64,000 nucleotides of DNA from Macrostomum lignano (Eukaryota), in NCBI GenBank assembly GCA_002269645.1, contig NIVC01000026.1, positions 31,395-95,394 of the forward strand, read 5' to 3'. How positions within the stretch are numbered: the stretch's first letter is position 1; every line of letters begins with the position of its first letter. Under the pieces are notes generated by a model that was not told the origin of the DNA, searched no databases, and worked only from the letters and a program-made list of their open reading frames with translations. Positions 16,525 through 59,500 of this stretch are shown piece by piece. The position numbers were made by a program, and so were the translations under genes.

Positions 16525-16722
16525 TAATTGTAACTGCTTTTTCAATAATTCCAATAACATTGCCTGTTGAAGTGTTAAACTAATCAAATCAACTTAAATC
16601 CATTAATAGCAATTTATCTATGATCTTCACTTTTGTAATGCTATACTTACAGCATAAAAACAAAAAAGCCATGCACTCGATTAAAAAGGATTAACATTTC
16701 TTTGCATGAGCAAATAAGCAAA

Positions 16723-17763
16723 ATGATGGCTGGCAATGGTAACCGAGGCGACAAGGAGACTGAGCAGCTCAGAAAGCTGTTCATTGGCGGCCTGACGCCA
16801 AACGTGACAGAAGACGATCTGAAGGGCCACTTTGGTCAGTGGGGCGAGCTTGTTGACGTGGTGGTGATGAAGGACAAGGTGTCTGGCCGGTCTCGCGGCT
16901 TTGGCTTCGTCACCTACAAGGACGAGTCAAGCGTGGATGACGCGCAGGCGAACCGGCCGCACGTGCTCGACAACAAGGAGGTGGACACGAAGCGGGCGAT
17001 GCCCCGGGGTGACGCGAACAAGGACGAGAGCCACGTGAGAGTGGAGAAGCTGTTTGTGGGTGGTCTGAAGCCGGAGACCACCGAGGACGATCTGCGCGAG
17101 TATTTCGGCTCCTACGGTGAGGTTGCGTCAGCCGAGATTGCCGTGATGCGGGAGACTGGCAAGCCGCGCGGCTTCGGCTTCGTCACGTTCAAGGACTACG
17201 ATCCGGTGGACAAGGCGATTCTGTACAAGCCGCACAACATCGGCGGCAATCCGCGAGTGGACTGCAAGAAGGCCCTGTCCAAAGAGCAGATGGCCGAGGT
17301 GAAGGCTCGCCAAGCTTCCGGGTTCAACGTTCGCGGCGGCTTCGCTGGGCGGGGCGGCGGCGGCGGCTATGGGGGTGGCTACGGAGGCGGATATGGCGGC
17401 GGCTATGGAGGCGGCTACGGTGGAGGCTACGGCAATGGGACCTATGCTGGTGGCTATGGCGACGGCGGCTACGGCGGTGGCTATGGCGAGGCTGGTTACG
17501 CCGGAGGTTACGCCGCCGGTGCCGACATGGGCGGCTACAGCGAAGGTGGTGAAGGCGCCTACGGCAATGGCGCAGCGGCTGGCGGCGGTTTCGGCTCCTA
17601 CGGCAGCCAAGGTTACGCTGGCGGCCCCGCCAAGCCGGTTGGCGGATTCGGCGGCGGCCCGCAGCGATTCCAGCCGTACGGCGCCGGCGGCCGTGGTGGA
17701 GGTCGCGGACGCGGCGGCGGTGCCACTGGTGGGTTCCGGGGTGGTCGTGGTGAGTGTTGTTAG
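16723..17763 (+). CDS. HNRNPA1/A2B1-like: hnRNP A/B-family RNA-binding protein (2 RRM + Gly/Tyr-rich tail), copy 1
   Basis: RNP2/RNP1 motifs LFIGGL/RGFGFVTY and LFVGGL/RGFGFVTF; GGGY repeats and RGG tail; first ATG 16723; possible terminal intron 17750-18294. Confidence 0.93.
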   Translation: MMAGNGNRGDKETEQLRKLFIGGLTPNVTEDDLKGHFGQWGELVDVVVMKDKVSGRSRGFGFVTYKDESSVDDAQANRPHVLDNKEVDTKRAMPRGDANKDESHVRVEKLFVGGLKPETTEDDLREYFGSYGEVASAEIAVMRETGKPRGFGFVTFKDYDPVDKAILYKPHNIGGNPRVDCKKALSKEQMAEVKARQASGFNVRGGFAGRGGGGGYGGGYGGGYGGGYGGGYGGGYGNGTYAGGYGDGGYGGGYGEAGYAGGYAAGADMGGYSEGGEGAYGNGAAAGGGFGSYGSQGYAGGPAKPVGGFGGGPQRFQPYGAGGRGGGRGRGGGATGGFRGGRGECC

Positions 17764-19839
17764 CGAGCCGGTTGGCTTAGTTTTTGGCGCATTTATTTTC
17801 AATTGCAAAATTGCTGGTAAAGAATTGCGCTCAAAATTAAAACTCGCTATATGGGATTAAGATATTTTTGCTCTAATATTCATCTTGTAAATTTCACCAC
17901 AAAATATTGCAGGCGGTTACTAATTGGGACTGGCTGATTAACTAACGGAAGGCACAATCGACTTTTATGCTGCCTGTAATTCGAGTCTTGGGGAAAACCT
18001 GCTACTAAATCTCTCTGTCGTCTGTTTACCAATTGGATGCTGTTCTCATGGGATTCGGGGTAAGTTTGATTGCACATTTAATCAATTTTTTGTTTTTATT
18101 GCTCACTAAAACTGTTGCTGTATGCGTGCGCCTGTTTGAACTGCGTGCAAGGCTAATCTTTTATTAGCTCAAACTATCTTTAAGAAAGTTGTTCTCTGTA
18201 AGTTAAGTGTACGGTGTTTATATGCTAAGAAAATGTGCTTATAATTTACTTAAGAATCAGTCATTAAATCTATATTTATATCTACTAATTTCAGGTTGAG
18301 CAAAAGTCACACACACACCCAGTCAGTCAGTCAGTCTGAAGCGCAGGGCCACTCAGATGTTAAGCAACCTAGGAGATTGTGTGTGCGTGTTGAGACCGTT
18401 TTTTATAGCGTAAGTAGGACAGGCCTGGTCTCGACAATGGACTGAGTGAGGAGATAATTCGGGCTAAGATAATTAGCCAATCAAAAGGAGAGCACAGATC
18501 ATGTTGGTAATGGAATCAGCCACGTTATTGAAAAGGTTGTTCAGCGGACTGCAGTGAAATCTCGACCCCGAAGTCAGTGAGGCAGCCAGTCACCAGCTTA
18601 ACTATTAATGCATAGACGGCAAGGTCTAATAAATGTGTTGTGCAATTACTCTTTGCTAAATGGGGATTATAAACTTATAATTTTTTATAAATCTGAAGTG
18701 TGCCCATATTCCTTATTTTATTTTGTCATGAGTTCTAAGGCTATGTGGGAGGAATATTATTTAAATTGCAGCTCGAATAACTATCTGCAGCCTCAGGTGT
18801 CAGGCGGGCATTAGTAGCGACTAGCGAGTATTTTCTCAACTTAAGACTGTTTTACTTAGCAGCTAATAGTCGATTTTTAGTGTTCATATTTACCTATCCA
18901 TATGTAATGAATAAGCTGTATACTAATTAGTCTTGTGTAATTTATCAGTTCTGTTTTTTGAGAAAACTGCCACTTGTAATAATATGCCAGTTAATTAAAT
19001 ATTGTTTGAATTCCTCAAGCTTAAGGCAACACGCAATTTTGTGTCAATTGCTCTTACAACTTTGCTCTTGCGTGAACATGATTGTTGTCAGTTAGGTGCA
19101 AAATAACTTATTATATAACTAGTAGTAGTATAAGTATACATATAGTCGTAAGTGTAAGCGGGTGTGACTATTTTTGTAGTTATTAATTAACTTTTCTTAC
19201 GCTGAAAAACTTCACTTTTACCACAATTAGTAGCTTCATTGTTCAAATTTAAGGCTTGGGCTATTTTTATTACTTATCAAAGGCGGTAAACTCTAATTTA
19301 GTTGATAATTGTTGTTCCATATTTCGCTTCTGTAAGATTAATAATTTGATCTGATCGACCCAATGTTAGCATCAAAAGTGAACATGAGTTGACAGGCTGA
19401 AATATAAGTTATTAATGGAAAAGGAGTTACTAATCTGCCAGGCCAAGCTGTAAAAAGCTAATTATTAAATAGGCCCGGTGTTGCTCCTAGCTAGCGAAAT
19501 TGTTGCTCTCGCAGCAGAGGCAGTGCGTGCGTTAGCTTAACTAGCCTTTTTCTATCGTGAAAGAGTTTCCTTAGTTGTCATTTAATTATTATGTAATTAT
19601 TCGGGTATTGTTGAAGCGTGAATGTGATTAACAATGATCTGGAATTGATTGAGCGCTTGTCTGTATGTGTTCTAGATCAATAAGGACGTTTAAGGTCAGA
19701 CATTAGAAAGTTCTTTGTGTGGCTGTGATTGAAAGAATGTCATCATCATTTGAAGTCTGTAACTCTACCCTACTAGGGTTCCATTCTGTTAAATGCCCAA
19801 CCAATCTAGTTGGATTGCTTTCAGACTTCAGAATTCAAC

Positions 19840-20823
19840 ATGATGGCTGGTAACCGAGGCGACAAGGAGACTGAGCAGCTCAGAAAGCTGTTTATTGGCG
19901 GCCTGACGCCAAACGTGACAGAAGACGATCTGAAGGGCCACTTTGGCCAGTGGGGCGAGCTTGTTGACGTGGTGGTGATGAAGGACAAGGTGTCTGGCCG
20001 GTCTCGCGGCTTTGGCTTCGTCACCTACAAGGACGAGTCGAGCGTGGATGACGCGCAGGCGAACCGGCCGCATGTGCTCGACAACAAGGAGGTGGACACG
20101 AAGCGGGCGATGCCCCGGGGTGACGCGAACAAGGACGAGAGCCACGTGAGAGTGGAGAAGCTGTTTGTGGGTGGTCTGAAGCCGGAGACCACCGAGGACG
20201 ATCTGCGCGAGTATTTCGGCTCCTACGGTGAGGTTGCGTCAGCGGAGATTGCCGTGATGCGGGAGACTGGCAAGCCGCGCGGCTTCGGCTTCGTCACGTT
20301 CAAGGACTACGATCCGGTGGACAAGGCGATTCTGTACAAGCCGCACAACATCGGCGGCAATCCGCGAGTGGACTGCAAGAAGGCCCTGTCCAAAGAGCAG
20401 ATGGCCGAGGTGAAGGCTCGCCAAGCTTCCGGGTTCAACGTTCGCGGCGGCTTCGCTGGGCGGGGCGGCGGCGGCGGATATGGGGGTGGCTACGGAGGCG
20501 GATATGGCGGCGGCTATGGAGGCGGCTACGGTGGCTATGGAGGTTACGGTGACGCAGGCTACGGTGGCTACGGGGATGCCGTAGGCTACGACGCCGGAGG
20601 CTACAGCGAAGGTGGCGAAGGCGCCTACGACAATGGCGGCGGTTTCGGCTCCTACGGCAGCCAAGGCTACGCTGGCGGCCCCGCCAAGCCGGTTGGCGGA
20701 TTCGGCGGCGGCCCGCAGCGATTCCAGCCATACGGCGCCGGCGGCCGTGGTGGTGGTCGCGGACGTGGAGGCGCCGGCATTGGCGGCGGCTTTCGCGGTG
20801 GCCGTGATGAGTGTCAAGGTTGA
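19840..20823 (+). CDS. HNRNPA1/A2B1-like: hnRNP A/B-family RNA-binding protein, copy 2
   Basis: RRM region essentially identical to copy 1; shorter Gly-rich tail; ATG 19840; TTTCAG acceptor-like site 15 nt upstream. Confidence 0.93.
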   Translation: MMAGNRGDKETEQLRKLFIGGLTPNVTEDDLKGHFGQWGELVDVVVMKDKVSGRSRGFGFVTYKDESSVDDAQANRPHVLDNKEVDTKRAMPRGDANKDESHVRVEKLFVGGLKPETTEDDLREYFGSYGEVASAEIAVMRETGKPRGFGFVTFKDYDPVDKAILYKPHNIGGNPRVDCKKALSKEQMAEVKARQASGFNVRGGFAGRGGGGGYGGGYGGGYGGGYGGGYGGYGGYGDAGYGGYGDAVGYDAGGYSEGGEGAYDNGGGFGSYGSQGYAGGPAKPVGGFGGGPQRFQPYGAGGRGGGRGRGGAGIGGGFRGGRDECQG

Positions 20824-21760
20824 TTTGCTTTAGTGAAATAAAATTTTGTTAAAAATGCACTTTTATACTAAATAACTTATTTGCGATCCGCCAAACCCCC
20901 TGTGTCGATGACTTTGCAGGCGGGCGTGGTGGCTATTAGACCGGGAGGAACTCTGATGCACAGCTCGACTGCAAAGGATTTTAAAGCTGTGCAGTGAACA
21001 CGATTTCATAATATATATGTTCGCATACGACTTACTGAACTCGATCTTTTCTCCTGCCGTTCTGCTCTTGTCTATGTGTTGTGTTTTGGCTTTTGTATTG
21101 TGCATTCTGCTTTTTTATGAAGAAGCAATGTTGTCTGCGCAAGCAGTTGCTGGTCTTTTACCATAAATAAGTTTTAGTTTCTCAATTAGCGGCCCGTGAA
21201 ACTTGAAAGTTAACACCTGTGCTGATAATTGCGCAATTATTGAATTATCGTTTATGAAATTTCATGGCAGCAGTTGCTGGGGTCTCTGTTAGTTTTTGTG
21301 TAAAAAATATATTTTAAACAAAATTTAATATTCGTTATGTATTCAAATATACCAAATGGGTTTAAAGAGTTGAAGGCATGCAGTTTTTGTTCATTCTCAA
21401 ATGTCTCGAGTCAGTTAATTGAAATTGTCACAAGGCAAATTTACAATCCCGAGCTATGCCTGGTCCTTGACTTCGTTTCTTTGCTGAGCCGGCTTTAAAT
21501 GAAACAAAAAACTGAATCGTTGAATTCCAATGAGTTTTGAAAATATTCAAATTTCAAATTCCATTCCTGTCTGGTTAAGAAAGTTGGCTAATTCGAAATT
21601 TTTTATATTCTTTAAAAAACGCTTGAAAATGTTTGGTTAGCAAAGTTTTATAAATAAAATCTCCAATCAGTTTTCGTTATATTTTTTAAACAGAACACAT
21701 TGTTCGTCGCTTGCATTCAGCTTAAGACATTGAAATCAAATTGCAAAGAGATATTCTGTG

Positions 21761-24700
21761 ATGGCTGTCCAAAAGCTAACTGTTTTCCTAATATTGGCGG
21801 CCATTACTCTCTGCTTTGGTGAGCGAATACTTTTGGTTTTGATTATCAACTGTTGGTAATTTCTGATAGAGTAGTCTTAGTCTTCACATCTCCAGTTTTC
21901 GTATTCAGAAGAATAACTATTGGTCTGCAATAAATAAAATGATGTCTTGCCTTATAGCTCTGATGTTCATAAAACTTTTCGTTTAGAAAATTAGGATTCT
22001 TTGGTAATTTTATCCTACGTACATGTACTGTGCAAAAAAATTATGAGAATGGTACAGCTAAATTTATTGGTTTTATGAATCTATACTATAATTCTTAGTT
22101 AATCACTAAGAGCCTCTTCATATCGATGGTTCTGGTTCTGGAACATGGTTCGAGAAATTTTATCGAACCGCTGTCATGTTTACACTTTAACAGTAAAATA
22201 TATTTGAAATCGTCAAGTTTTTATTATTGTTATATAATTATTCCGTTTTTTGTCATATCCAAGGCAAAACAAAGTCAAAGAACGACAAAATTAAATTGTA
22301 AAAACTGTCAAACATAAAATGGGTATCGGAAGCTCCTCATATTACACTGGTTCTGGTTCTAGAACCGATTGCCGTGAAGAGGCTCTTAACAAAATGAAAC
22401 GGAATGATAAAAATAGATTCATAAAACCAATGACTTGAGTTGTGCCATATTTTATAAATTTTTGGCATAGGCCGGACATGCACGCTTTATGAAAATCAAT
22501 TGAGAAAAGAACGCAAGACATCAAAAGATGAACAACTGTTGGTCTCCACTTCTATCAAAAGCAATAAGAATATTCGTGATAAAAAATAAAAACCTATACT
22601 CCGTACTTTTTAAAAGAAATCTGATTATTATAAGGTTTAATAAAAATTAGTTTATCAAATAATTGTTATAAACGCTGAATATCAACTTTTTGAGCTTAAG
22701 TTCGTTTTTAAATGCGTGAAAGCCAACTAACCAGCTAGAAAACCTGACATTTGAAAGAAAACTTCACACATCTGCAGTAAACTGCAAACGTAAGCTTTAA
22801 TTACAGTATTACATTTTGCAGCCCAGGATGACCCCTTCGAGCCTTCAATTTTCGGTAAGTATAGTTGCACTCTTTAAATTACATGTAAACATACATGCAT
22901 GTACAGACTACGCCAACTATGTTAATTGTGGTGCTCCATAATGTACACGTGCATATTTACATGTACATGTATACCCACATTCAGGGGCGTCGCCATGGAT
23001 TCATGTTGGGAGGACAAAGCCAAGAAGCTACATGTACATGCACATGACCATTGCAACATGCACATCATTTTAAGAATCGGTGCGTCAGCGCTCATGTAGG
23101 CGCCGCAGGCATTTCTTTTGGTGCTGCAGGCACTCATTTTAGCGCCACAGGCATTCACTTTAGCGCCACGTGCAGGCACTCATTTTAGCGCCGCAAGCAC
23201 TCATTTTGGCACCCCAGGCACTCATTTTAGCGTCGCAGGAACTTATTATGGTACATGTACCAAAGGACTCATTTAGCGCCACAGGCACTCATTTTGGCAC
23301 CCCAGGCACTTATTTTAGCGTCGCAGGAACTTAATATGGTACATGTACCAAAGGACTCATTTAGCGCCACAGGCACTCATTTTAGTGCCACAGGCACTCA
23401 TTTTGGCGCCGCAGACGCCGGGCGCTATATTTTGTCGCCGTGAAACAAAATTCTTGATGTCCATAACGGCAATTAAACGCGGGTCAAAAGGTAGGCCGTG
23501 GCGGGGACAAAGCATGCAATAGCATGTCCCCATGGCTTTTACTGGGGGGACACATGTCCCCCCCCTGTCTTCTCCGGTGGCGACGCCCCTGTCTACATTC
23601 GCATTATATTTCATTCCCACCTCAACTTTGAATCAAACTATTTTTTAGCGATTTCCGGCGACATTGATAGCCATAACGATGCAAAACCAATCAGTAAGTA
23701 TATGATAGTATACTATATGATGATACATTGTAGGGAGGGACAGCTGGGGCAGATAGAATGAAACAGCTGTGAAATGATTCGATTTTTATAGCAGCGTTAT
23801 ACTCATAAATCCGGCACTAATTTACTGTTCACCGTATTTAAATATGTCCGAACAGCTTTGCACGATTTGACAGAGGAGCAAGCGTTGTTTGGTGAGCTGC
23901 AAATTATATCCACGTTCGCATATTCATAATTGCATAATTATTGACTGTTACATACACACAGTTCAAGCATTGCTTAAATAAAGCACTGAAAATATTTTAG
24001 CTGTCATTAACTTCGGACCGTCGATTTCTGGTGAGCATGCAATGAATTTATGAATTTAATTCTAATAGATCGATTTCACCTGCCCCAATCGACAGATGTG
24101 CAACTGACAGCTCATAGCCAGCTCATATTGCGCGGCACAAACTGTTCCAAGTAGCTCAAGAATCGAGCCCCCGACCATTAGTCGGCTGCACAAACCACAA
24201 GCGTCGGACTCACGACTGTAAGGTCGGGGGTTCGATTCCCGATCTCACTGGAACAATTTATGTCCTTGAGAAAGACACTTAAATCTGCATTGTCTCAGTT
24301 CACCCATTAGCTGAGGTAATTGAGGCTGCGTTTGACGACCCCCCAGTCCTTGGACTGAACAGCCGTACGCAGCCTTCAGATGCGCCGCGCCATAGCTGCG
24401 GCTGAGCTGTCGGTTGCACATCTTGCCAAATTTGGACAGGTGTAATCAATAATAATAATATAATAATTAATAATCAAAATTAACCAAGATAATTAAAGGC
24501 TTATACGGTTCTACTTCCTATACCGCTTCAGGCGCAGACGATGAGGACACCGGTCCAGGTGAGCTAATTTATATTTGTGCAGCAATGTGCCTATTATGAA
24601 CCTGTTAATTAGGGAGCTTTACTGACCATATATAGTGGGTTAAAGTTTTATTGTGATTATTTTGATGCTGTTATAGATCAGGTGAAATCTCTGACCAGAC

Positions 24701-27700
24701 AGGTATGCACACCAGGTAAAAAAACAGGTAATATAAGTGGAGTAACGGTCTACATAATGTAAATAATGTAAAAATGTACAGATTTCCCATTTGAATAAAG
24801 AAGCAAAAAAGTAATCAATAAATTAGAAAGAATCCATCGTGCACCGCACCGGCTTAGCCATCTCCGTCACTGAAGCCATTGGCTTTTAAGACGACCAGGT
24901 AAAAATCTTGTTTAGGTAAAAATAATTGTTTACAAAATAATGGCTGACCACTGGAACTTTAAGAAAGGAGCATTTTTATTTCATGGAATCGACAGACACT
25001 GTTAACAGTAAATTAAACACCCCGGCTTGCAAGTAAACACCCCGGCTAGTAATTAAACACCCCGGCTTGCAATTAAACACCCAGCTAGCAATTAAACACC
25101 CAGCTAGCAATTAAACACCCAGCAAGCAATTAAACACCCAGCTAGCAATTAAACACCCAGCAAGCAATTAAACACCCAGCTAGCAATTAAACACCCCGGC
25201 TTGCAAGTAAACACCCGGCTAGTAATTAAACACCCCAGCTTGCAAGTAAACATCCGGCTAGTAATTAAACACCCAGCTAGCAATTAAACACCCAGCTAGC
25301 AATTAAACACCCAGCTAGCAATGAAACACCCCGGCAAGCAATTAAACACCCAGCTAGCAGTTAAACACCCAGCTACGAGTAGCAATTAAACACCCAGCTA
25401 GCAATTAAACACCCAACTAGCAATTAAACACCCAGCTAGCAATTAAACACCCGGCAAGCAATTAAACACCCAGCTAGCAATGAAACACCCCGGCAAGCAA
25501 TGAAACACCCCGGCAAGCAATTAACCACCCAGCTAGCAGTTAAACACCCAGCTACGAGTAGCAATTAAACACCCAGCTAGCAATTAAACACCCAACTAGC
25601 AATTAAACACCCAGCTAGCAATTAAACACCCCGGCAAGCAATTAAACACCCCGGCAAGCAATTAAACACCCCGGCTGGCAATTAGACACCCAGCTAGCAA
25701 TTAAACAAAATGAATGTAGATAACAGATCAAAAATGTCGTCTAATAACGAGTAGCGAGGGACGAATATGAAAAGAATCTTTACAGCATGTGTGATTTTCA
25801 AACAGGGCATATTCATAAGTAGAATATATCCTACTTCCTACGGTAAGTACCTCATCAATATTATCCCGACTGCTTATAATCGAATTATACATTAATGGCT
25901 TTCAGTCCCGTCGCCGCCACCAACTGAGAAGCCGACAGGTGAGTCAGGTGATAAATATTTAATTAGCGCTTAATCAAGCCACCAACTACAGGTGAGTCAG
26001 GTGATAAATATTTAATTAGCGCTTAATCAAGCCAATAAACTTGATAATTACGTCATTTCAGTCCCACCGCCGCCACCAACTGAGAAGCCGACAGGTGAGT
26101 CAGGTGATAAATATTTAATTAGCGCTTAATCAAGCTAATAAACTTGATAATTATGTCATTTCAGTCCCACCGCCGCCACCAACTGAGAAGCCGACAGGTG
26201 AGTCAGGTGATAAATATTTAATTAGCGCTTAATCAAGCTAATAAACTTGATAATTATGTCATTTCAGTCCCACCGCCGCCACCAACTGAGAAGCCGACAG
26301 GTGAGTCAGGTGATAAATATTTAATTAGCGCTTAATCAAACTCATAAACTTGATAATTCTGTCATTTTAGTCCCACCGCCGCCACCAACTGAGAAGCCGA
26401 CAGGTGAGTCAGGTGATAAATATTTAATTAGCGCTTAATCAAACTCATAAACTTGATAATTCTGTCATTTTAGTCCCACCGCCGCCACCAACTGAGAAGC
26501 CGACAGGTGAGTCAGGTGATAAATATTTAATTAGCGCTTAATCAAACTCATAAACTTGATAATTCTGTCATTTTAGTCCCACCGCCGCCACCAACTGAGA
26601 AGCCGACAGGTGAGTCAGGTGATAAATATTTAATTAGCGCTTAATCAAGCTAATAAACTTGATAATTACGTCATTTCAGTCCCACCGCCGCCACCAACTG
26701 AGAAGCCGACAGGTAAGTCAGGTGATAAATATTTAATTAGCGCTTAATAAGTGTGGAGTAACTTGCAAGAACTGCGAGAGTCTGGAGTTTGGAGAGTGTG
26801 GAGCTTGGAGAGTGTGGAGTTTGGAAATTATGGAGTTTTGGAAAGTGTGGAGTTTGGAAAGTGTGGAGTTTGGAAAGTGTGGAGTTTGGAAAGTGTGGAG
26901 TTTGGAGAGTGCGGAGCTTGGAAGGTGTGAAGTTTGGAAAGTGTGAAGTTTGGAGAGTGCGGAGCTTGGAAGGTGTGAAGTTTGGAAAGTGTGAAGTTTG
27001 GAAAGTGTGGAGTTTGGAGAGTGCGGAGCTTGGAAAGTGTGGAGTTTGGAAAGTGTGGAGTTTGGAAAGTGTGGAGTTTGGAAAGTGTGGAGTTTGGAGA
27101 GTGCGGAGCTTGGAAGGTGTGAAGTTTGGAAAGTGTGAAGTTTGGAAAGTGTGGAGTTTGGAGAGTGCGGAGCTTGGAAAGTGTGGAGTTTGGAAAGTGT
27201 GGAGTTTGGAAAGTGTGGAGTTTGGAAAGTGTGGAGTTTGGAGAGTGCGGAGCTTGGAAGGTGTGAAGTTTGGAAAGTGTGAAGTTTGGAAAGTGTGGAG
27301 TTTGGAGAGTGCGGAGCTTGGAAAGTGTGGAGTTTGGAAAGTGTGGAGTTTGGAGAGTGTTGAGTTTGGAGAGTGCGGAGCTTGGAGAGTGTGGAGTTTG
27401 GAAAGTGTGGAGTTTGGAGAGTGTGGAGTTTGGAGAGTGCGGAAGCTTGGAGAGAGTGGAATTTGGAGAGTGTGGAGTTTGGAAAGTGTGGAGTTTGGAA
27501 AGTGTGGAGTTTGGAAAGTGTGGAGTTTGGAGAGTGCGGAGTTTGGAAAGTGTGGAGTTTGGAGAGTGCGGAGTTTGGAAAGTGTGGAGTTTGGAAAGTG
27601 TGGAGTTTGGAGAGTGCGGAGCTTGGAGAGTGTGGAGCTTGGAGAGTGCGGAGTTTGGAAAGTGTGGAGTTTGGAGAGTGTGGAGTTTGGAGAGTGCGGA

Positions 27701-30273
27701 GCTTGGAGAGTGTGGAGCTTGGAGAGTGCGGAGTTTGGAAAGTGTGGAGTTTGGAGAGTGTGGAGTTTGGAGAGTGCGGAGCTTGGAGAGTGTGGAGTTT
27801 GGAGAGTGTGGAGTTTTTCGAATTTATTTATTAATTAGCTGGTGTAAAGACATTTTCGGTGACTTACAGTTCCAGAATCGATCACTACGACACCTAAAAC
27901 TTCAAAGCCGAAAGGTGAGCAGTCTTTATCTTGTCAATAGATGCTACTTTGCTCTGACAAGATAACACAACGAAAATAAGGTACATGCAAGTTCTAAAGC
28001 ACTTATGGTTTTCGTTTCAGTTCGTGAATGTAAGTTGAATTGTGGAATGTTTTGTTTTAATTTTGCTCTACTGATCACAGACTCCACAATGAGAGCTGCA
28101 GTTACTGATGAAGCTTTGGCTTCAACAACAATAAAAACCGCACAACTGCAGTTGAATACGTTGGCTGCTACGCAAATCACCACGGCACCGAGACGGCCCT
28201 GGATGATATACCGCGGAGCCACCCGGAAATGACGGTAGTCGACTGTTACTTCTTTTGCACCCTGAGATTTGCCAACTATTTTGGAATTTTTGACGCAACC
28301 AAATGCTACTGCGGATTTACGATCAACACGACCCAAGTGGTGCAGGACCGCTGCAGGCTCACTTGTCCCGGAAATCCATTGGAAATCTGCGGCGGCAGCA
28401 GTGCAATCAGCATTTACGTTTTGCCGAAACCGAAAGTAGTTAGTCGGCCAGGTGAGTGTCTATGAATCGGGGTAAGTGTCCATAGGGTGTCCGTTAATCA
28501 AGGTACGTGTCTATAGGGTGAGTGTCCATTAATCGGGTTTAGTGTCCATAGGATGAGTGTCCATATTCGGGGTCAATGTCCATAGGATGAGTGTTCATAA
28601 TCAGGATAAGTGTCCATAGGGTGTCCGTTAATCAAAGTAAGTGTCTATAGGGTGAGTGTCCATTAATCGGGGTAGGTGTCCATAGGATGAGTCCATAATC
28701 GGGGTAGGTGTTTATTGGATGAGTCCATAATCGGGGTAAATGTCCATAGGGTGAGTATCCATAATTGGGGTAAGTGTCCATAGGGTGAGTATCCATAATT
28801 GGGGTAAGTGTCCATAGGGTGAGTATCCATAATTCGGGTAAGTGTCCATAGGGTGAGTATCCATAATTGGGGTAAGTGTCCATAGGGTGAGTATCCATAA
28901 TTGGGGTAAGTGTCCATAGGGTGAGTATCCATAATTGGGGTAAGTGTCCATAGGGTGAGTATCCATAATTGGGGTAAGTGTCCATAGGGTGAGTATCCAT
29001 AATTGGGGTAAGTGTCCATAGGGTGAGTATCCATAATTGGGGTAAGTGTCCATAGGGTGAGTATCCATAATTGGGGTAAGTGTCCATAGGGTGAGTATCC
29101 ATAATTGGGGTAAGTGTCCATAGGGTGAGTATCCATAATTGGGGTAAGTGTCCATAGGGTGAGTATCCATAATTGGGGTAAGTGTCCATAGGGTGAGTAT
29201 CCATAATTGGGGTAAGTGTCCATAGGGTGAGTATCCATAATTGGGGTAAGTGTCCATAGGGTGAGTATCCATAATTGGGGTAAGTGTCCATAGGGTGAGT
29301 ATCCATAATTAGGGTAAGTGTCCATAGGGTGAGTATCCATAATTGGGGTAAGTGTCCATAGGGTGAGTATCCATAATTGGGGTAAGTGTCCATAGGGTGA
29401 GTATCCATAATTGGGGTAAGTGTCCATAGGGTGAGTATTCATAATTGGGGTAAGTGTCCATAGGGTGAGTATCCATAATTGGGGTAAGTGTCCATAGGGT
29501 GAGTATCCATAATCGGGGTAAGTGTCCATAGGGTGAGTATCCATAATCGGGGTAAGTGTCCATAGGGTGAGTATCCATAATTGGGGTAAGTGTCCATAGG
29601 GTGAGTATCCATAATTGGGGTAAGTGTCCATAGGGTGAGTATCCATAATTGGGGTAAGTGTCCATAGGGTGAGTATCCATAATTGGGGTAAGTGTCCATA
29701 GGGTGAGTATCCATAATCGGGGTAAGTGTCCATAGGGTGATTATCCATAATTGGGGTAAGTGTCCATAGGGTGAGTATCCATAATCGGGATAAGTGTCCA
29801 TAGGGTGAGTGTCCATAATTGGGGTAAGTGTCCATTAATCGGTCCGTCATTCTATGAACACTTTCTCAAGTACATAGAAATACATACAAATTGTACAACC
29901 CTGAAGCCTAAGATGAATCGCTATTATGGATAAACAGTAAAAAGATTTTTAATTATTGCAACTTTCAGAAGATCCTGTTGGCTGCTATTTTGCCAGTGAT
30001 TCATCAACGCTGGGAGGACCCAAACTGTCCAGCTCGGACATGACTCAGTCAGTTTGCGCCAGTGAGTGTGCCAAGTACCTGACCAAATATTTCGGCTTGA
30101 TGACAAAGGACTCACAAGGGAGCTGCCATTGCGGCAACGAAATTCCATCTGGGGAGCAAAACCAATACGACATGAGCTTCTGCCAGTACAAGTGCCCCGG
30201 GGTGAGATTCAACATGGAAGTGTGCGGGAGCGACATGTTTATGCTGGTGTTCAAACTGAATATACAGTCCTGA
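21761..30273 (+). CDS. Secreted Pro/Thr-rich stalk protein with two WSC domains (14 exons)
   Basis: Exons 21761-21818 (signal peptide MAVQKLTVFLILAAITLCFA), 22822-22854, 24532-24558, eight 33-nt exons (starts 25906, 26062, 26165, 26268, 26371, 26474, 26577, 26680), 27870-27914, 28081 (or 28152)-28451, 29969-30273. All introns are phase 1 GT-AG. WSC patterns YVGCY..MTVVDC..C..YFG..CYCG..C..CPGN..CGG..IY and VGCY..MTQSVC..C..YFG..CHCG. AATAAA at ~30330. Confidence 0.85.
22982..23591. mobile_element. Non-autonomous hAT-like element with internal 20-bp repeats
   Basis: Perfect 14-bp TIR CAGGGGCGTCGCCA; flanks CCCACATT / TCTACATT (decayed 8-bp TSD); internal GCACTCATTTTAGCGCCACAG repeats. Confidence 0.8.
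24199..24465 (+). mobile_element. tRNA-derived SINE (5' truncated) with CORE-like segment
   Basis: B-box GGTTCGATTCC at 24229; TGTCCTTGAGAAAGACACTT at 24261; (AAT)n tail. Confidence 0.65.
25010..25705. repeat. Intronic minisatellite, ~19 bp (GCAATTAAACACCCAGCTA)
   Basis: Tandem array. Confidence 0.95.
25901..26750 (+). repeat. 103-bp tandem repeat = 33-nt exon + 70-nt intron units
   Basis: Exact 103-bp period from 26062; each unit has TT(C/T)AG acceptor, exon TCCCACCGCCGCCACCAACTGAGAAGCCGACAG and GT(G/A)AGT donor. Confidence 0.95.
26780..27816. repeat. Intronic minisatellite, 16 bp (GTGTGGAGTTTGGA(A/G)A)
   Basis: Tandem array; accounts for ORFs 26789-27965. Confidence 0.95.
28452..29840. 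repeat. Intronic minisatellite, 34 bp (GGGTGAGTATCCATAATTGGGGTAAGTGTCCATA)
   Basis: Highly homogeneous array starting at the exon donor. Confidence 0.95.
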
Positions 30274-31644: not shown

Positions 31645-34600
31645 TCAGCGCCGTTTAATAGCAACGTAAATATTCCAAAGAAGAGACAGGCCGCACATGA
31701 ACAGCACTCGGTACTGAAATTATTAATACAAATTATTTATAATATATATTCATAAAGACTCATGCATACACAATGTTCAAAAACAAAGGCTCACCTTTTG
31801 CGGTACATAGTTGATATTAATAAACTGGAACAGGGACCAGATCTTCACGTTCATTTTCAGCACGTCTAAGAAGCTGTCCTTGACTTTGGCGTGCGCGAAC
31901 GCCAAGGATCGGCCCTGCGAGATTGAAGATTTTGTCAGAATTAAATACTCTATTATCACTTTTCTACTTAGCATTAGTACCCATTCGTGTCCCAATCTAC
32001 ATCTACTCAATCCCTATCTACCCAATTCCTATCTACCCAATCCCTATCTACCCAATCCCTATCTACCTAATCCCTATATACCTAATCCCTATCTACCCAA
32101 TTCCTATCTACCTAATCCCTATCTACCCAATCCCTATCTACCCAATTCCTATCTACCCAATCCCTATCTACTCAATTCCTATCTACCCAATTCCTATCTA
32201 CCCAATCCCTATCTACCCAATCCCTATCTACCCAATCCCTATCTACCTAATCCCTATCTACCCAATCCCTATCTACCCAATTCCTATCTACCCAATCCCT
32301 ATCTACCTAATCCCTATCTACCCAATCCCTATCTACCTATATTCCCTATATACCCAATTCCTATCTACCCAATCCCTATCTACCCAATTTCTATCTACCC
32401 AATCTCTATCTACCCAATCCCTATCTACCCAATTCCTATCTACCCAATCTCTATCTACCCAATCCCTATCTACCCAATTTCTATCTACCTAATCCCTATC
32501 TACCTAATCCCTTATCTACCTAATCCCTATCTACCCAATCCCTATCCACCCAATCCCTATCTACCCAATCCCTATCCACCCAATCCCTATCTACCCAATC
32601 CCTATCTACCCAATCCCTATCTACCCAATCCCTATCTACCCAATCCCATCTACCCAATCCCTATCTACCCAATCCCTATCTACCCAATCCCATCTACCCA
32701 ATCCCTATCTACCCAATCCCTATCTACCCTATCCCTATCTACCCAATCTCCATCTACCTAATCCCTATCTACCCAATCCCTATCTACCCAATCCCTATGT
32801 ACCCAATCCCTATGTACCCAATCCCTATCTACCTAATCCCTATCTACCCAATCCCTATCTACCCAATCCCTATCTACCTAATCCCTATCTACCTAATCCC
32901 TTATCTACCTAATCCCTATCTACCCAATCCCTATCCACCCAATCCCTTTCTACCCAATCCCTATCCACCCAATCCCTATCTACCCAATCCCTATCTACCC
33001 AATCCCTATCTACCCAATCCCTATCTACCCAATCCCATCTACCCAATCCCTATCTACCCAATCCCTATCTACCCAATCCCATCTACCCAATCCCTAATCT
33101 ACCCAATCCCTATCTACCCTATCCCTATCTACCCAATCTCCATCTACCTAATCCCTATCTACCCAATCCCTATCTACCCAATCCCTATGTACCCAATCCC
33201 TATGTACCCAATCCCTATCTACCTAATCCCTATCTACCCAATCCCTATCTACCCAATCCCTATCTACCCAATCCCTATCTACCCAATCCCTATCTACCCA
33301 ATCCCTATCTACCTAATCCCTATCTACCCAATCCCTATCTACCCAATCCCTATCTACCCAATTCCTATCTACCCAATCCCTATCTACCCAATCCCTATCT
33401 ACCCTATCCCTATCTACCCAATCCCTATCTACCTAATCCCTATCTACCCAATTCCTATCTACCCAATCCTTATCTACCTAATCCCTATCTACCCAATCCC
33501 TATCTACCTAATCCCTATCTACACAATCCCTATCTACGAGTACCTAATCCCTTATCTACCTAATATCCATCTACCCAATCCCTATCTACCTAATTCCTAT
33601 CTACCCAATCCCTATCTACCCAATCCCTATCTACCCTATCCCTATCTACCCAATCCCTATCTACCTAATCCCTATCTACCTGATCCCTATCTACCCAATC
33701 CCTATCTACCCAATTCCTATCTACCCAATCCCTATCTACCCAATCCCTATCTACCCAATCCCTATCTACCCAAGCCCTACATGTATCTACCCAATCTCCA
33801 TCTACTCTATATTTTATCTACCCAATCTTCATCTACCAAATTTCCATCTACACATTCCCTATCTAGTCTATCCTTATCTACCAATCTCCATCTACCCAAT
33901 CCCTACGTACCCAATCTCCATCTACCCTATCTATCTACCCTATCCAACTAATCTCCATCTACCCTATCCCTATCTACCCAATCCAACTAATCTCCATCTA
34001 CCTCTCAGTCTCACCTCGAACAGCGGCACTGAATAGTAGAGCAACAGCAGGTAAGGCGGTGCCAACAGCAGCCTGTCAATCAGAGTGCGTTTCAACGCTA
34101 CAAACTGTTGGTCAGAGTCCTTGGGCAGAGCCCTGTCCAACTGGCGATAGAAAGCGTGAATCAACGGGCCAGAAATAAAGAAGCCAAAGGCTGAATAAGC
34201 GAAGGTGCTTCTCAGGCTGAACTGGCCGCCAGTGCCGGGTTTGGGCGCGATCAGCTGTGACAGAATGTCGCCTAGGCCGAAAATTGCGCCGCTAAGATGA
34301 CGGATGGTTGTTAAGGGGTGAAGCCTGAATATAAATCATTGGATTTGTGACCCGCAACCATTCGGCTCACTGCTAGCTTATATTATCTCACACTCTTTGG
34401 TTCAAAGGTGTCACCTGACCCCTCTCGATTCATATCCTTCACAGAAGGGGTCACCTGACCCCTCCCGTTTCATATACTTCACTGACAGGGGTCACCTGAC
34501 CCTCCCGATTCATATTCTTCACTGACAGGGGTCACCTGACCCCTCCCGTTTCATATACTTCACTGACAGGGGTCACCTGACCCCTCCCGTTTCATATACT

Positions 34601-56289: not shown

Positions 56290-59200
56290 TGTTTGGCATG
56301 ACACTTCTTTTATGTTTGAAATGGGGTCTCTTTTTTGTTTAAAAAGGTGGCTCTTTAATGTTTGACATGGTGGCTCTTCTATGTTTGACATGGTAGCTTC
56401 TTTGTGTTTGACATGATAGCTCTTTAATGTTTGACATGGTGGCTCTTTAATGTTTGACATTGAGTCACGTAAATGTTTCACATGATGGCTCTTTTATGTT
56501 TGACATGATGGCTCTTTTATATTTTACATGGTGGCTCTTTAATGTTGGACATGGTGGCTCTTTAATGTTTGAAATGGTGGCACTTTTATGTTTGACATGG
56601 TGGCTCTTTAATGTTCGCCATGGTGGCTCTTTAATGTTTGACATGGTGGCACTTTTATGTTGGACATGGTCGCTCTTTAATGTTCGCCATGGTGGCTCTT
56701 TAATGTTTGACATGGTGGCTCTTTTATGTTTGACATGGTGGCTCTTTAATGTTCGCCATGGTGGCTCTGTTATGTTTGACATGGAGTCACGTATACGTTT
56801 GACATAGTGTCTCTTCTATGTTTTACATGGTGGCTATTCTGTGTTTGACATGATAGCTCTTTAATGTTTGACATGGAGTCCCGTATATTTTTGACATAAT
56901 GGCACTTTTATGTTTGACATGGTGGCTCTTTTATGTTTGACATCGTTGCTCTTTTATGTTTGGCATGGTGGCTCTTAAATGTTCGACATGGTGGCTCTTA
57001 AATGTTCGACATGGTGGCTCTTTTATGTTCGACATGGTGGCTCTTTTATGTTTGACATGCTGGCCCTTTAATGTTCGACATGGTGGCTCTTTAATTTTTG
57101 ACATAGTGGCACTTTTATGTTTGACATGGTGGCACTTTTATGTTTGACATGGAGTCACGTATACGTTTGACATAGTGTCTCTTCAATGTTTAACATGGTG
57201 GCTATTTTGTGTTTGACATGATAGCTCTTTAATGTTTGACATGGAGTCCCGTATATTTTTGACATAATGGCACTTTTATGTTTGACATGGTGGCTCTTTT
57301 ATGTTTGACATCGTTGCTCTTTTATGTTTGGCATGGTGGCTCTTAAATGTTCAACATGGTGGCTCTTAAATGTTTGGCATGGTGGCTCTTTTATATTTGG
57401 CATGGTGGCTCTTTTATGTTCGACATGGTGGCTCTTTTATGTTCGACATGGTGGCTCTTTTATGTTTGACATGCTGGCCCTTTAATGTTCGACATGGTGG
57501 CTCTTTAATTTTTGACATAGTGGCATTTTTATGTTTGACATGGTGGCACTTTTATGTTTGACATGGAGTCACGTATACGTTTGACATAGTGTCTTTTCAA
57601 TGTTTGACATGGTGGCTATTTTGTGTTTGACATGATAGCTCTTTAATGTTTGACATGGTAGCTCTTTAATGTTCGCCATGGTGGCTTTTTAATGTTTGAC
57701 ATGGTGGCTCTTTTATGTTTGACATGGTGGCTCTTTACTGTGTGAAATAGTGGCTCTTTAATGTTCTACATGGTAACTCTTTTATGTTTGACATGGTGGC
57801 TTTTTAATGTCTGACATGGTGGCTCTTTTATGTTTGACATGGTGGCTCTTCTATGTTTAACATGGTGGCTCTTTTATGTTTGATACGGTGGCTTTTTAAT
57901 GTCTAACATGGTGGCTCTTTTATGTTTGACATGGTGGCTCTTCTATGTTTAACATGGTGGCTCTTTTATGTTTGACACGGTGGCTCTTTAATGTTCGACA
58001 AAGTGGCTATTTGATGTTTGATATGGTGACTCTTAAATGTTATACATGGTGGCTCTTTACTGTTTGAAATGGTGGCTCTTTAATGTTCGAAATGGTGGCT
58101 CTTTTATGTTTGACATGGTGGCTCTTTTAGGTTTGACATGATTGCACTTTTATGTTTTGACATGGTAGCTCTTAAATGTTTGACATGGTAGCCCTTAAAT
58201 GTTTGACATGGTAGCTCTTTTATGTTCGACATGGTGGCTCTTTATTGTTTGACATGGTGGCTCTTTAATGTTTAACCTGGTGGCTCTTTTATGTTTGACA
58301 CGGCGGCTCTCTAGTGTTTGACAAAGTGGCTATTTAATGTTCGAAATGGTGGCTCTTTAAAGTTTGACATAAAGTCACATATATGTTTAAGATGGTGGCT
58401 CTTAAATGTTTGACATGGTGGCTCTTAAATGTTTGACATGGTGGCTCTTTAATGTTCTTCATGGTGGCTCTTTAATATTCTACATGGTGGCTCTTTTATG
58501 TTCGACATGATGGCTTTTTAATGTCTGACATGGTGGCTCTTTTATGTTTGACATGGTGGCTCTTCTATGTTTAACATGGTGGCTCTTTAATGTTCTACAT
58601 GGTAACTCTTTTATGTTTGATACGGTGGCTTTTTAATGTCTGACATGGTGGCTCTTTTATGTTTGACATGGTGGCTCTTTAATGTTCTTCATGGTGGCTC
58701 TTTAATATTCTACATGGTGGCTCTTTTATGTTCGACATGGTGGCTGTTTTTTGTTCTACATGGTAACTCTTTTATGTTTGATACGGTGGCTTTTTAATGT
58801 CTGACATGGTGGCTCTTTTATGTTTGACATGGTGGCTCTTCTATGTTTAACATGGTGGCTCTTTTATGTTTGACACGGTGGCTCTTTAATGTTCGACAAA
58901 GTAGCTATTTGATGTTTGATATGGTGACTCCTAAATGTTTTACATGGTGGCTCTTCTATGTTTGACATGGTGGCTCTTTATTGTTTGACATGGTGGCTCT
59001 TTAATGTTTAACCTGGTGGCTCTTTTATGTTTGACACGGCGGCTCTCTAATGTTTGACAAAGTGGCTATTTAATGTTCGAAATGGTGGCTCTTTAAAGTT
59101 TGACATAAAGTCACATATATGTTTGACATGGTGGCTCTTAAATGTTTGACATGGTGGCTCTTAAATGTTTGACATGGTGGCTCTTAAATGTTAGACGTGG

Positions 59201-59500
59201 TGGCTTGTTTAGGTTTGACATGGTGGCTCTTTAATGTTTGACATAATGGCTCTTAAATGTTTGACATGGTGGCTCTTAAATGTTAGAAATGTTAGACGTG
59301 GTGGCTTGTTTAGGTTTGACATAGTGGCTCTTCTATGTTTGAAATGGTGGCTTTTTAATCGTTGACATGGAGTCACGTATATGTTTGACATAGTGCTTAT
59401 TTTATGTTTGACATGGTAACTCTTTTATATTCGAAATGTTGGCTCTTTAATGTTCGACATGGTGGCTCTTCTATGTTTGACATTGCGCTTCTATTATGTT
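56290..59500. repeat. Minisatellite, 23 bp (GACATGGTGGCTCTTTTATGTTT)
   Basis: 3.2-kb array with higher-order blocks. Confidence 0.95.

Follow-up and report, generated by a model that had tools for sequence, protein, structure and literature searches.

A tandem array of complete 33-nt exons in a gene for a putatively secreted WSC-domain protein of Macrostomum lignano

Introduction

The terminal 64 kb of contig NIVC01000026.1 (assembly GCA_002269645.1, Mlig_3_7) of Macrostomum lignano (a flatworm that is free-living), the stretch referred to here as the window, contains a gene, BOX15_Mlig001594g18, with an unusual minisatellite: each 103-bp unit consists of one complete 33-nt exon together with a 70-nt intron. 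Eight such exons lie between an exon for a predicted signal peptide and two exons for WSC domains, and encode a proline-rich segment that we call the stalk. We consider it highly probable that this array is a tandemly duplicated exon cassette of BOX15_Mlig001594g18, the annotated model of which is described as RNA-based.

Results

Identity and exon map of the gene

The deposited GenBank protein for the gene that carries the array is PAA93502.1 (314 aa, "hypothetical protein", WSC domain). When the C-terminal 216 residues were used as a protein query, two M. lignano proteins were recovered with 100% and 97% identity, a third M. lignano protein clustering with the 100%-identity match (PAA93502.1), and the locus of PAA93502.1 on the contig is base-for-base identical to window positions 11761-40273. 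The exon map (Table 1) was obtained by placing the three deposited proteins on their own loci with a splice-aware exact search, and the window exons, when spliced by hand, gave an open frame with two WSC domains. The coding sequence (CDS) of PAA93502.1 joins the signal-peptide exon, five micro-exons, two of the eight repeat exons, a 45-nt exon, and both WSC exons. The annotation of the assembly is itself described by its authors as RNA-based, with de novo transcripts placed by BLAT and RNA-seq data processed by STAR, StringTie, and a TACO merge (PMC5730564).

The array shares its reading frame with the signal-peptide exon and both WSC exons, and in a model that includes every repeat exon all introns (17 of 17) are phase 1 and the length of every internal exon is a multiple of three. 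Judged by eye, exon 1 encodes a predicted signal peptide with a basic n-region, a 12-residue hydrophobic core, and the residues C-F-A before QDD. The models deposited for the two paralogous loci described below include the 9-nt exon (TTCGTGAAT; VREFEF...), and the window model omits it (VEY...); this omission may reflect either true skipping or a micro-exon overlooked by the aligner.

The first-pass annotation, made from the sequence alone, had placed the signal-peptide exon, the array, and the WSC exons in one frame. The CDS of PAA93502.1, which joins all three, bears this out, but six further small symmetric exons had been missed. The accompanying remark that no open reading frame (ORF) track shows this gene is true of ORF scans, in which neither strand gave an ORF of at least 35 aa over the array, but GenBank does contain an annotation for it under PAA93502.1. 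No tRNA or Rfam family overlapping the array was found either, and a tRNA-like stretch near 24,100-24,250 was not confirmed.

Table 1. Coordinates in the window of the exons and tandem arrays of the WSC gene. L002 and L003 are the two other copies of the locus in the assembly; phases are given as start-end.
Feature	Position	Strand	Remarks
Exon 1, start codon and signal-peptide-like segment MAVQKLTVFLILAAITLCF	21761..21818	+	58 nt, ends in phase 1; exact match to PAA93502.1
Micro-exon AQDDPFEPSIF	22822..22854	+	33 nt, phase 1-1; identical in three loci
Micro-exon AISGDIDSHNDAKPI	23649..23693	+	45 nt, phase 1-1; PAA93502.1 map
Micro-exon TLHDLTEEQALF	23856..23891	+	36 nt, phase 1-1; PAA93502.1 map
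Micro-exon AVINFGPSIS	24001..24030	+	30 nt, phase 1-1; PAA93502.1 map
Micro-exon GADDEDTGP	24532..24558	+	27 nt, phase 1-1; PAA93502.1 map
103-bp tandem array, eight exon and intron units and one degenerate 53-bp unit	25900..26748	+	
Repeat exon U1, VPSPPPTEKPT	25906..25938	+	33 nt; upstream intron of unique sequence
Repeat-exon remnant CCACCAACTACAG and GTGAGT donor	25979..25991	+	In the degenerate 53-bp unit; without a normal acceptor
Repeat exon U2, VPPPPPTEKPT	26062..26094	+	33 nt
Repeat exon U3, VPPPPPTEKPT	26165..26197	+	33 nt
Repeat exon U4, VPPPPPTEKPT	26268..26300	+	33 nt
Repeat exon U5, VPPPPPTEKPT	26371..26403	+	33 nt
Repeat exon U6, VPPPPPTEKPT	26474..26506	+	33 nt
Repeat exon U7, VPPPPPTEKPT	26577..26609	+	33 nt
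Repeat exon U8, VPPPPPTEKPT	26680..26712	+	33 nt; donor GTAAGT
Thr/Pro/Lys-rich linker exon VPESITTTPKTSKPK	27870..27914	+	45 nt, phase 1-1; PAA93502.1 map
Micro-exon TTCGTGAAT	28021..28029	+	9 nt, consensus splice sites intact; identical in three loci
WSC 1 exon	28152..28451	+	300 nt, phase 1-1; 8 Cys; PF01822
WSC 2 exon and stop codon, last coding exon	29969..30273	+	305 nt; 8 Cys; PF01822
19-bp minisatellite, intron upstream of the array	25011..25707		Copies: window 35.5, L002 24.5, L003 38.5
16-bp minisatellite, directly downstream of the array	26779..27816		Copies: window 64.8, L002 30.4, L003 34.8
34-bp minisatellite from the WSC 1 donor	28451..29835		Copies: window 40.9, L002 6.9, L003 73.9
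21-mer array of the gene			Copies: window 14.9, L002 10.9, L003 14.9

The 103-bp exon array

The array extends from 6 nt 5' of exon U1 to about 36 nt 3' of the last donor, and is described by Tandem Repeats Finder as 7.4 copies of period 103 (98% matches, score 1410). Each repeat exon is bordered by TTTCAG or TTTTAG on its 5' side and by GTGAGT (GTAAGT after U8) on its 3' side, is phase 1 at both ends, its first codon beginning with one base of the exon before it, and is separated from the next by a GT-AG intron of 70 nt. Exons U2 to U8 are identical at the DNA level (TCCCACCGCCGCCACCAACTGAGAAGCCGACAG); U1 deviates from them at two adjacent bases, and each of the three loci begins its array with this variant. 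An additional in-frame donor-like site (CAG/GTGATA) occurs in every unit, 9 nt 3' of the real donor. When all 35 tandem arrays of the window were scanned for the core YAG + 3n + GTRAGY recurring at least three times, the 103-bp array was the only one to contain it.

Exon spacing is 103 nt throughout the window array except between U1 and U2, where it is 156 nt. Here lies a degenerate 53-bp unit, for which Tandem Repeats Finder also gives period 53 with 1.9 copies, and which reads like a 103-bp unit from which 41 nt and another 9 nt are missing, the 41-nt loss comprising the intron end and the first 12 nt of the exon. The degenerate unit is found only at the window locus; in the two other loci U1 and U2 are 103 nt apart.

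The reading of the 103-bp repeat as acceptor, 33-nt exon, and donor, eight times over, had been proposed in the first-pass annotation and agrees with both our reading of the units and the core scan, as does the coding of VPSPPPTEKPT once and VPPPPPTEKPT seven times by symmetric phase-1 exons. The broken unit that it had reported is likewise real and consists of CCACCAACTACAG and GTGAGT. That the array units are exons at all is upheld by the deposited PAA93502.1, which uses repeat exons in an annotation described as RNA-based.

The predicted protein

The encoded protein comprises, in order, the predicted signal peptide, about 55 acidic residues from the five micro-exons, (VPPPPPTEKPT)n, a Thr/Pro/Lys linker, and two WSC domains. 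The latter, which had been claimed from the letters of the sequence, were recovered twice in a Pfam domain check as PF01822 (90.9 bits against a cut-off of 27.8, E = 6e-26, two stretches), the better stretch spanning profile positions 1-82 of 82; counted in the translated exons, each domain has eight conserved cysteines. The closest solved structures by sequence are the cysteine-rich domain of yeast Wsc1 (7pz2, E = 3.6e-7) and the WSC domain of KREMEN1 (1.5e-3). No hydrophobic segment that might serve as a membrane anchor was seen, and the frame ends after the second WSC domain.

Proline makes up 53% of the stalk, and each unit has two threonines. Proline-rich, threonine-containing sequences form extended polyproline-II helices (approximately 0.31 nm per residue) and are typical substrates for O-glycosylation. 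The stalk may thus be a polyproline-II, O-glycosylated spacer, in which case its length would be roughly 24, 27, and 37 nm for 7, 8, and 11 units, respectively. WSC domains are putative carbohydrate-binding modules and occur in the Wsc sensors of yeast and in fungal beta-glucan-binding WSC lectins. Judging from the order of its segments, the product is most likely a secreted lectin-like molecule with a rigid, glycosylated spacer between an acidic N-terminal segment and two putative glycan-binding domains. The first-pass annotation had put forward mucus, adhesion, or microbial recognition as candidate settings for its role.

A HMMER search with PAA93502.1 against 1.84 billion representatives returned 2563 matches, the best 150 of which are all multi-WSC proteins with approximately 30% identity. 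The ten relatives that were looked up come from oysters, fungi, a diplonemid, and metagenome or read-archive contigs, and align by the WSC half only. Given that the relatives among the best 150 of 2563 matches align in this manner, there are no stalk-bearing orthologues among them. A word-index protein search with the N-terminal part plus the stalk gave 5427 candidates, none at E <= 0.01, and one with the N-terminal 77 residues gave no candidate; both missed PAA93502.1 itself, in which these residues occur exactly, so neither negative is informative about the presence of the stalk or the acidic N-terminal module in other genes. In the literature we found no mention of this gene, or of a WSC domain in Macrostomum.

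Three copies of the locus

Two more copies of the neighbourhood, L002 and L003, are present in the same assembly and are 97.4-97.6% identical to the window outside repeats. All three have the same gene content, with two RRM/Gly-rich genes, the WSC gene, and then an Mpv17/PMP22 gene on the other strand. The M. lignano genome contains three subgenome copies (S, L1, and L2) that differ by approximately 1.4-2.4% in SNPs and for the most part through indels, and the sequenced line is highly inbred with negligible allelic heterozygosity (PMC10733133). The identity of about 97.5% fits this picture, and on that basis the three loci are probably the S, L1, and L2 copies.

The number of array units is 8 (plus the degenerate one) in the window, 7 in L002, and 11 in L003, so that copy number varies at the DNA level between three loci of one assembly. 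The 103-bp period is retained with 96-98% matches across the loci. Unit types can be told apart by seven variable intron positions, each of which falls in the 3' half of the intron; the types are common to the loci but occur in different orders. The window array has three consecutive identical units; units 7-9 of L003 repeat its units 4-6, a higher-order duplication of 309 bp; and in one L002 unit the intron carries a 2-bp deletion and the exon a Pro-to-Leu change. That substitution aside, splice sites and open frame are intact in every complete-exon unit of the three loci. Because unit types have been reordered and units duplicated locus by locus, each array must have undergone its own remodelling after the copies separated, a divergence of about 1%, and the earlier phrase "live tandem amplification" is fair wording for this.

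Neighbouring minisatellites and sequence constraint

The gene contains four further tandem arrays (Table 1), and all five vary between loci, the intronic ones 1.4- to 10.7-fold and the exon array 1.6-fold. Within the exon array, the first 38 intron nucleotides (gtgagtcaggtgataaatatttaattagcgcttaatca; window 26095-26132) are invariant in 23 of 23 non-first units of the three loci, and the confinement of the seven variable sites to the 3' half of the intron is significant (Fisher p = 0.003). Between loci, exons diverge by 0.43-0.98%, compared with about 1.1-1.25% mismatches in non-coding sequence; the micro-exons are almost invariant, the counts being small.

The 34-bp minisatellite (L002 15786-16018 and L003 16497-18987 in the other loci) opens exactly at the WSC 1 donor, such that the last G of the exon and the GTGAGT belong to its first unit. 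In the window it contains 34 GGTGAGT and 32 GGTAAGT donor-like heptamers, amounting to dozens of decoy 5' splice sites.

Other features of the window

Upstream of the WSC gene, tandem paralogous genes at 16714-17923 and 19840-20939 (+) have products (341 and 332 aa) that combine two RRM-like segments with a tail rich in Gly and Tyr and by eye resemble hnRNP-A. The two genes share approximately 90-91% DNA identity, both are present in all three loci, and the downstream one is covered by a single continuous ORF (19810-20823). Downstream, the annotated Mpv17/PMP22-family gene (31645-34290, -) encodes 154 aa, compared with the longer products of 218 aa at the two paralogous loci, and its span encloses a 2-kb 15-mer array (32001-33984, 132 copies). 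Long arrays of hundreds to thousands of bases also include a 23-mer in 130 copies (56306-59291). A contig-internal (CTAACC)7.7 tract at 211-255 is the complement of a TTAGGG-type telomere repeat.

Discussion

Alternative interpretations

Several observations weigh against the exon-cassette reading of the array. The deposited models carry only two of the eight repeat exons in the window, five of seven in L002, and two of eleven in L003, full inclusion being an expectation; units were counted on PacBio-based contigs of a genome that is highly repetitive and in part chimeric; exon-specific conservation within the array is not significant (variable sites 1 of 33 in the exon versus 7 of 70 in the intron; Fisher p = 0.43); and synonymous/non-synonymous differences (4/3, 0/4, 4/5) are too few to demonstrate purifying selection. 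Taken at face value, the models could mean that the mature mRNA has far fewer repeat exons than the gene (e.g. U1 and one other) and that splicing sets stalk length. Splice sites are equivalent in all units, so any donor can join any later acceptor in frame, the 9-nt exon is likewise found in some models and missing from another, and schistosome micro-exon genes (MEGs) and SmPoMuc have transcript ladders of such a kind. We nevertheless regard this explanation as unlikely, since collapse of identical 33-nt units would leave just such unit numbers in the annotation. Non-first units are identical in exon sequence, except for the Leu unit of L002, and the annotated proteins have 7, 144, and 10 equally good placements on the window, L002, and L003 loci, respectively. 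Low counts are equally expected from short reads because de Bruijn assembly crosses a repeat loop the minimal number of times, and the unit from which a read originates is ambiguous because spliced alignment cannot distinguish identical units. Each model retains its distinguishable units (U1, and the Leu variant in L002), and the shortfall is confined to the indistinguishable ones. Moreover, with equally strong splice sites and 70-nt introns there is no evident cause for units to be ignored. The deposited models thus fit skipping and short-read collapse equally well. Inclusion of all units is probably the default on mechanistic grounds, given that the splice sites are identical and strong and that 70-nt introns are likely to be recognised by intron definition. 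Of the two sources of stalk-length variation put forward in the first-pass annotation, DNA copy number is borne out by the 8, 7, and 11 units, but the case for exon skipping is explained equally by collapse. That the unit numbers, or the whole array, are assembly artefacts masking a real genome with one or two repeat exons is very improbable. While the assembly is redundant, with 36% of its length in chimeric scaffolds (PMC10733133), and identical repeats are difficult to polish, a well-formed array occurs in each of three independent contigs, the orders of intron variants are distinct and internally consistent in each, and one contig has a degenerate unit specific to its locus. In addition, arrays of 0.7-1.1 kb are much shorter than PacBio reads, and the L002 model alone requires at least five units.

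A further alternative concerns selection only and is compatible with the array anatomy described above: there is an approximately even chance that array length varies as a neutral by-product of genome-wide minisatellite instability, with a spacer that tolerates the variation and a stalk whose length is not tuned. In the window, 35 tandem arrays with periods of 6-34 bp and higher-order multiples occupy approximately 20.2 kb (31.6% of the 64 kb), and the genome as a whole is 15% simple and tandem repeats (PMC5730564). Every intronic array of the gene varies, some of them far more than the exon array, so general repeat instability may account for the variable stalk as a side effect that is tolerated, and the comparison of exon and intron sites detected no exon-specific constraint within the array, where the first 38 intron nucleotides vary as little as the exon does. 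Complete-exon units, on the other hand, keep their splice sites and open frame in all three loci, with Pro-to-Leu the sole exception. Such intact units fit selection against broken ones, but they fit recent turnover equally well. The "tunable" stalk of the first-pass annotation is therefore more than can be maintained, as adaptive tuning is not established where every other intronic minisatellite of the gene also varies; we favour length variation that would be tolerated rather than selected.

Proposed origin and turnover of the array

Under the preferred reading, a tandemly duplicated exon cassette, an ancestral exon of 33 nt, phase 1 at both ends, would have become a 103-bp minisatellite unit together with approximately 70 nt of flanking intron. 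The simplest account is that the rampant minisatellite formation of this genome happened to capture one symmetric exon. Each unit brings its own acceptor, an exon of 3n nucleotides, and its own donor; because units of this type are self-contained, gain or loss of a unit, or pairing of any donor with a later acceptor, keeps the frame. Each gain or loss adds or removes 11 residues, approximately 3.4 nm if the stalk adopts a polyproline-II helix, and such changes would be tolerated because each unit is a frame-neutral cassette encoding a low-complexity spacer. The array may change by unequal exchange, replication slippage, and gene conversion, as may the neighbouring intronic minisatellites, and turnover of this kind would lead to stalks of 7, 8, and 11 units from three subgenome copies in one worm. 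The 70-nt introns would be removed one by one by intron definition, with all units included by default.

Significance

As a minisatellite built from whole exons, each with its intron, the array is a very clean and very compact case, and its unit is the smallest among the precedents compared. Through such a unit, DNA repeat instability would pass straight into protein length without frame problems, and in this neopolyploid genome three stalk versions would coexist in every animal. The under-counting of identical micro-exons by short-read RNA annotation (2/8, 5/7, and 2/11 here) matters for any repeat-rich genome. The architecture resembles that of MEGs and of SmPoMuc genes and is found here beyond the parasitic lineages, the only ones said to possess MEGs, and transgenesis and RNAi in M. 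lignano would allow the effect of stalk length to be tested.

A more far-reaching proposal, which we regard as doubtful, is that this early-branching free-living flatworm shares the MEG/PoMuc strategy, with a secreted lectin family of 7, 8, and 11 units and a 33-nt splicing ladder. If true, micro-exon and tandem-exon diversification of secreted proteins would predate parasitism, fed in this case by unusual minisatellite instability.

Comparison with known systems

The earlier comparison with flatworm micro-exon genes is apt, the source organism being itself a flatworm, and the closest parallel in gene architecture is SmPoMuc of Schistosoma mansoni. In SmPoMuc, a signal peptide is followed by 1 to approximately 55 (up to 100) nine-residue repeats, each encoded by one 27-bp exon 2 in an exon and intron unit of approximately 1 kb that is present in 1-20 head-to-tail copies (PMC2576457). 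These units are homogenised by concerted evolution, their numbers differ among gene copies, and the product is Thr/Pro-rich, glycosylated, and secreted; spider flagelliform silk is named in the same study as having a similar architecture (PMC2576457). The M. lignano gene likewise encodes a signal peptide (judged by eye) followed by repeats that each derive from one short exon of 3n nucleotides, has head-to-tail exon and intron units kept nearly identical, and differs in repeat-exon number among gene copies (8, 7, and 11 in one assembly). It differs in that its unit is 103 bp with a 70-nt intron, whereas that of SmPoMuc is approximately 1 kb with a microsatellite spacer, in that its C-terminal part consists of two WSC domains and is unrelated to that of SmPoMuc, and in that its host is free-living rather than parasitic. 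For SmPoMuc, transcripts with more repeats than the gene (exon repetition) have also been reported. No SmPoMuc-like sequence occurs among the best 150 of the 2563 HMMER matches, a search in which SmPoMuc sequences were not compared directly.

The second parallel is with the MEGs, including SmMEG-4.1 (antigen 10.3). MEGs likewise encode secreted proteins, with many symmetric micro-exons after a signal-peptide exon, and in SmMEG-4.1 tandemly repeated exons encode the Thr/Pro-rich, heavily O-glycosylated repeats of a secreted protein. MEGs are defined by micro-exons of 6-36 bp, mostly multiples of three, that make up most of the CDS (up to 75%), and are stated to be exclusive to parasitic flatworms. 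The M. lignano gene has the symmetric internal exons, the 5' signal-peptide exon, and introns that are all phase 1. Its micro-exon share is lower, with 399 of 1152 nt (35%) in exons of <=36 nt and 489 nt (42%) in exons of <=51 nt when all 8 units are counted, and half of the protein is encoded by two conventional WSC exons. MEGs, in contrast, encode small secreted proteins without known domains, and M. lignano, unlike their hosts, is free-living. Skipping of the MEG type is suggested by the 9-nt exon and several repeat exons that are missing from some deposited models, but annotation artefact explains this equally. No homology to schistosome MEGs was detected. The gene thus works like a PoMuc or MEG-4.1 gene and is a member of neither family. 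SmVAL6 offers a further likeness, as it combines conventional exons of a known extracellular domain with a MEG-like run of alternatively used small exons; its domain is SCP/TAPS and the run is C-terminal, whereas the M. lignano gene has WSC domains and an N-terminal run, and the SmVAL6 run is not described as a near-identical tandem array.

The principle also extends beyond flatworms, to spiders and to vertebrate structural genes. In spider Flag silk, titin PEVK, and fibrillar collagen, repetitive segments derive from iterated, tandemly duplicated exon-intron units; homogenisation in Flag is at least as strong in the introns as in the exons, and the spring length of titin is set by which of its small Pro-rich exons are used. 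The units of these genes are much larger and more diverged, none is known to form an array of identical 103-bp units, and the proteins are unrelated to the M. lignano product. At the protein level, yeast Wsc1 shares the WSC cysteine-rich domain, as the match to 7pz2 indicates, and an extended, glycosylated low-complexity stalk, the length of which matters for its function. Wsc1, however, has one N-terminal WSC domain, a Ser/Thr-rich stalk that comes from one exon, a transmembrane helix, and a cytoplasmic tail, whereas in M. lignano the stalk precedes two WSC domains and there is no membrane anchor.

Amplification of a short symmetric exon and its intron into a variable Pro/Thr-rich secreted stalk has already been described for SmPoMuc and SmMEG-4.1, and the M. 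lignano gene, whose product is likely to have a secreted, carbohydrate-binding role as far as its predicted domains indicate, opens no new category. What is new is the very small unit (103 bp, with 70-nt introns), its attachment to WSC domains, its occurrence in a free-living flatworm, and its presence at three lengths in what are probably subgenome copies.

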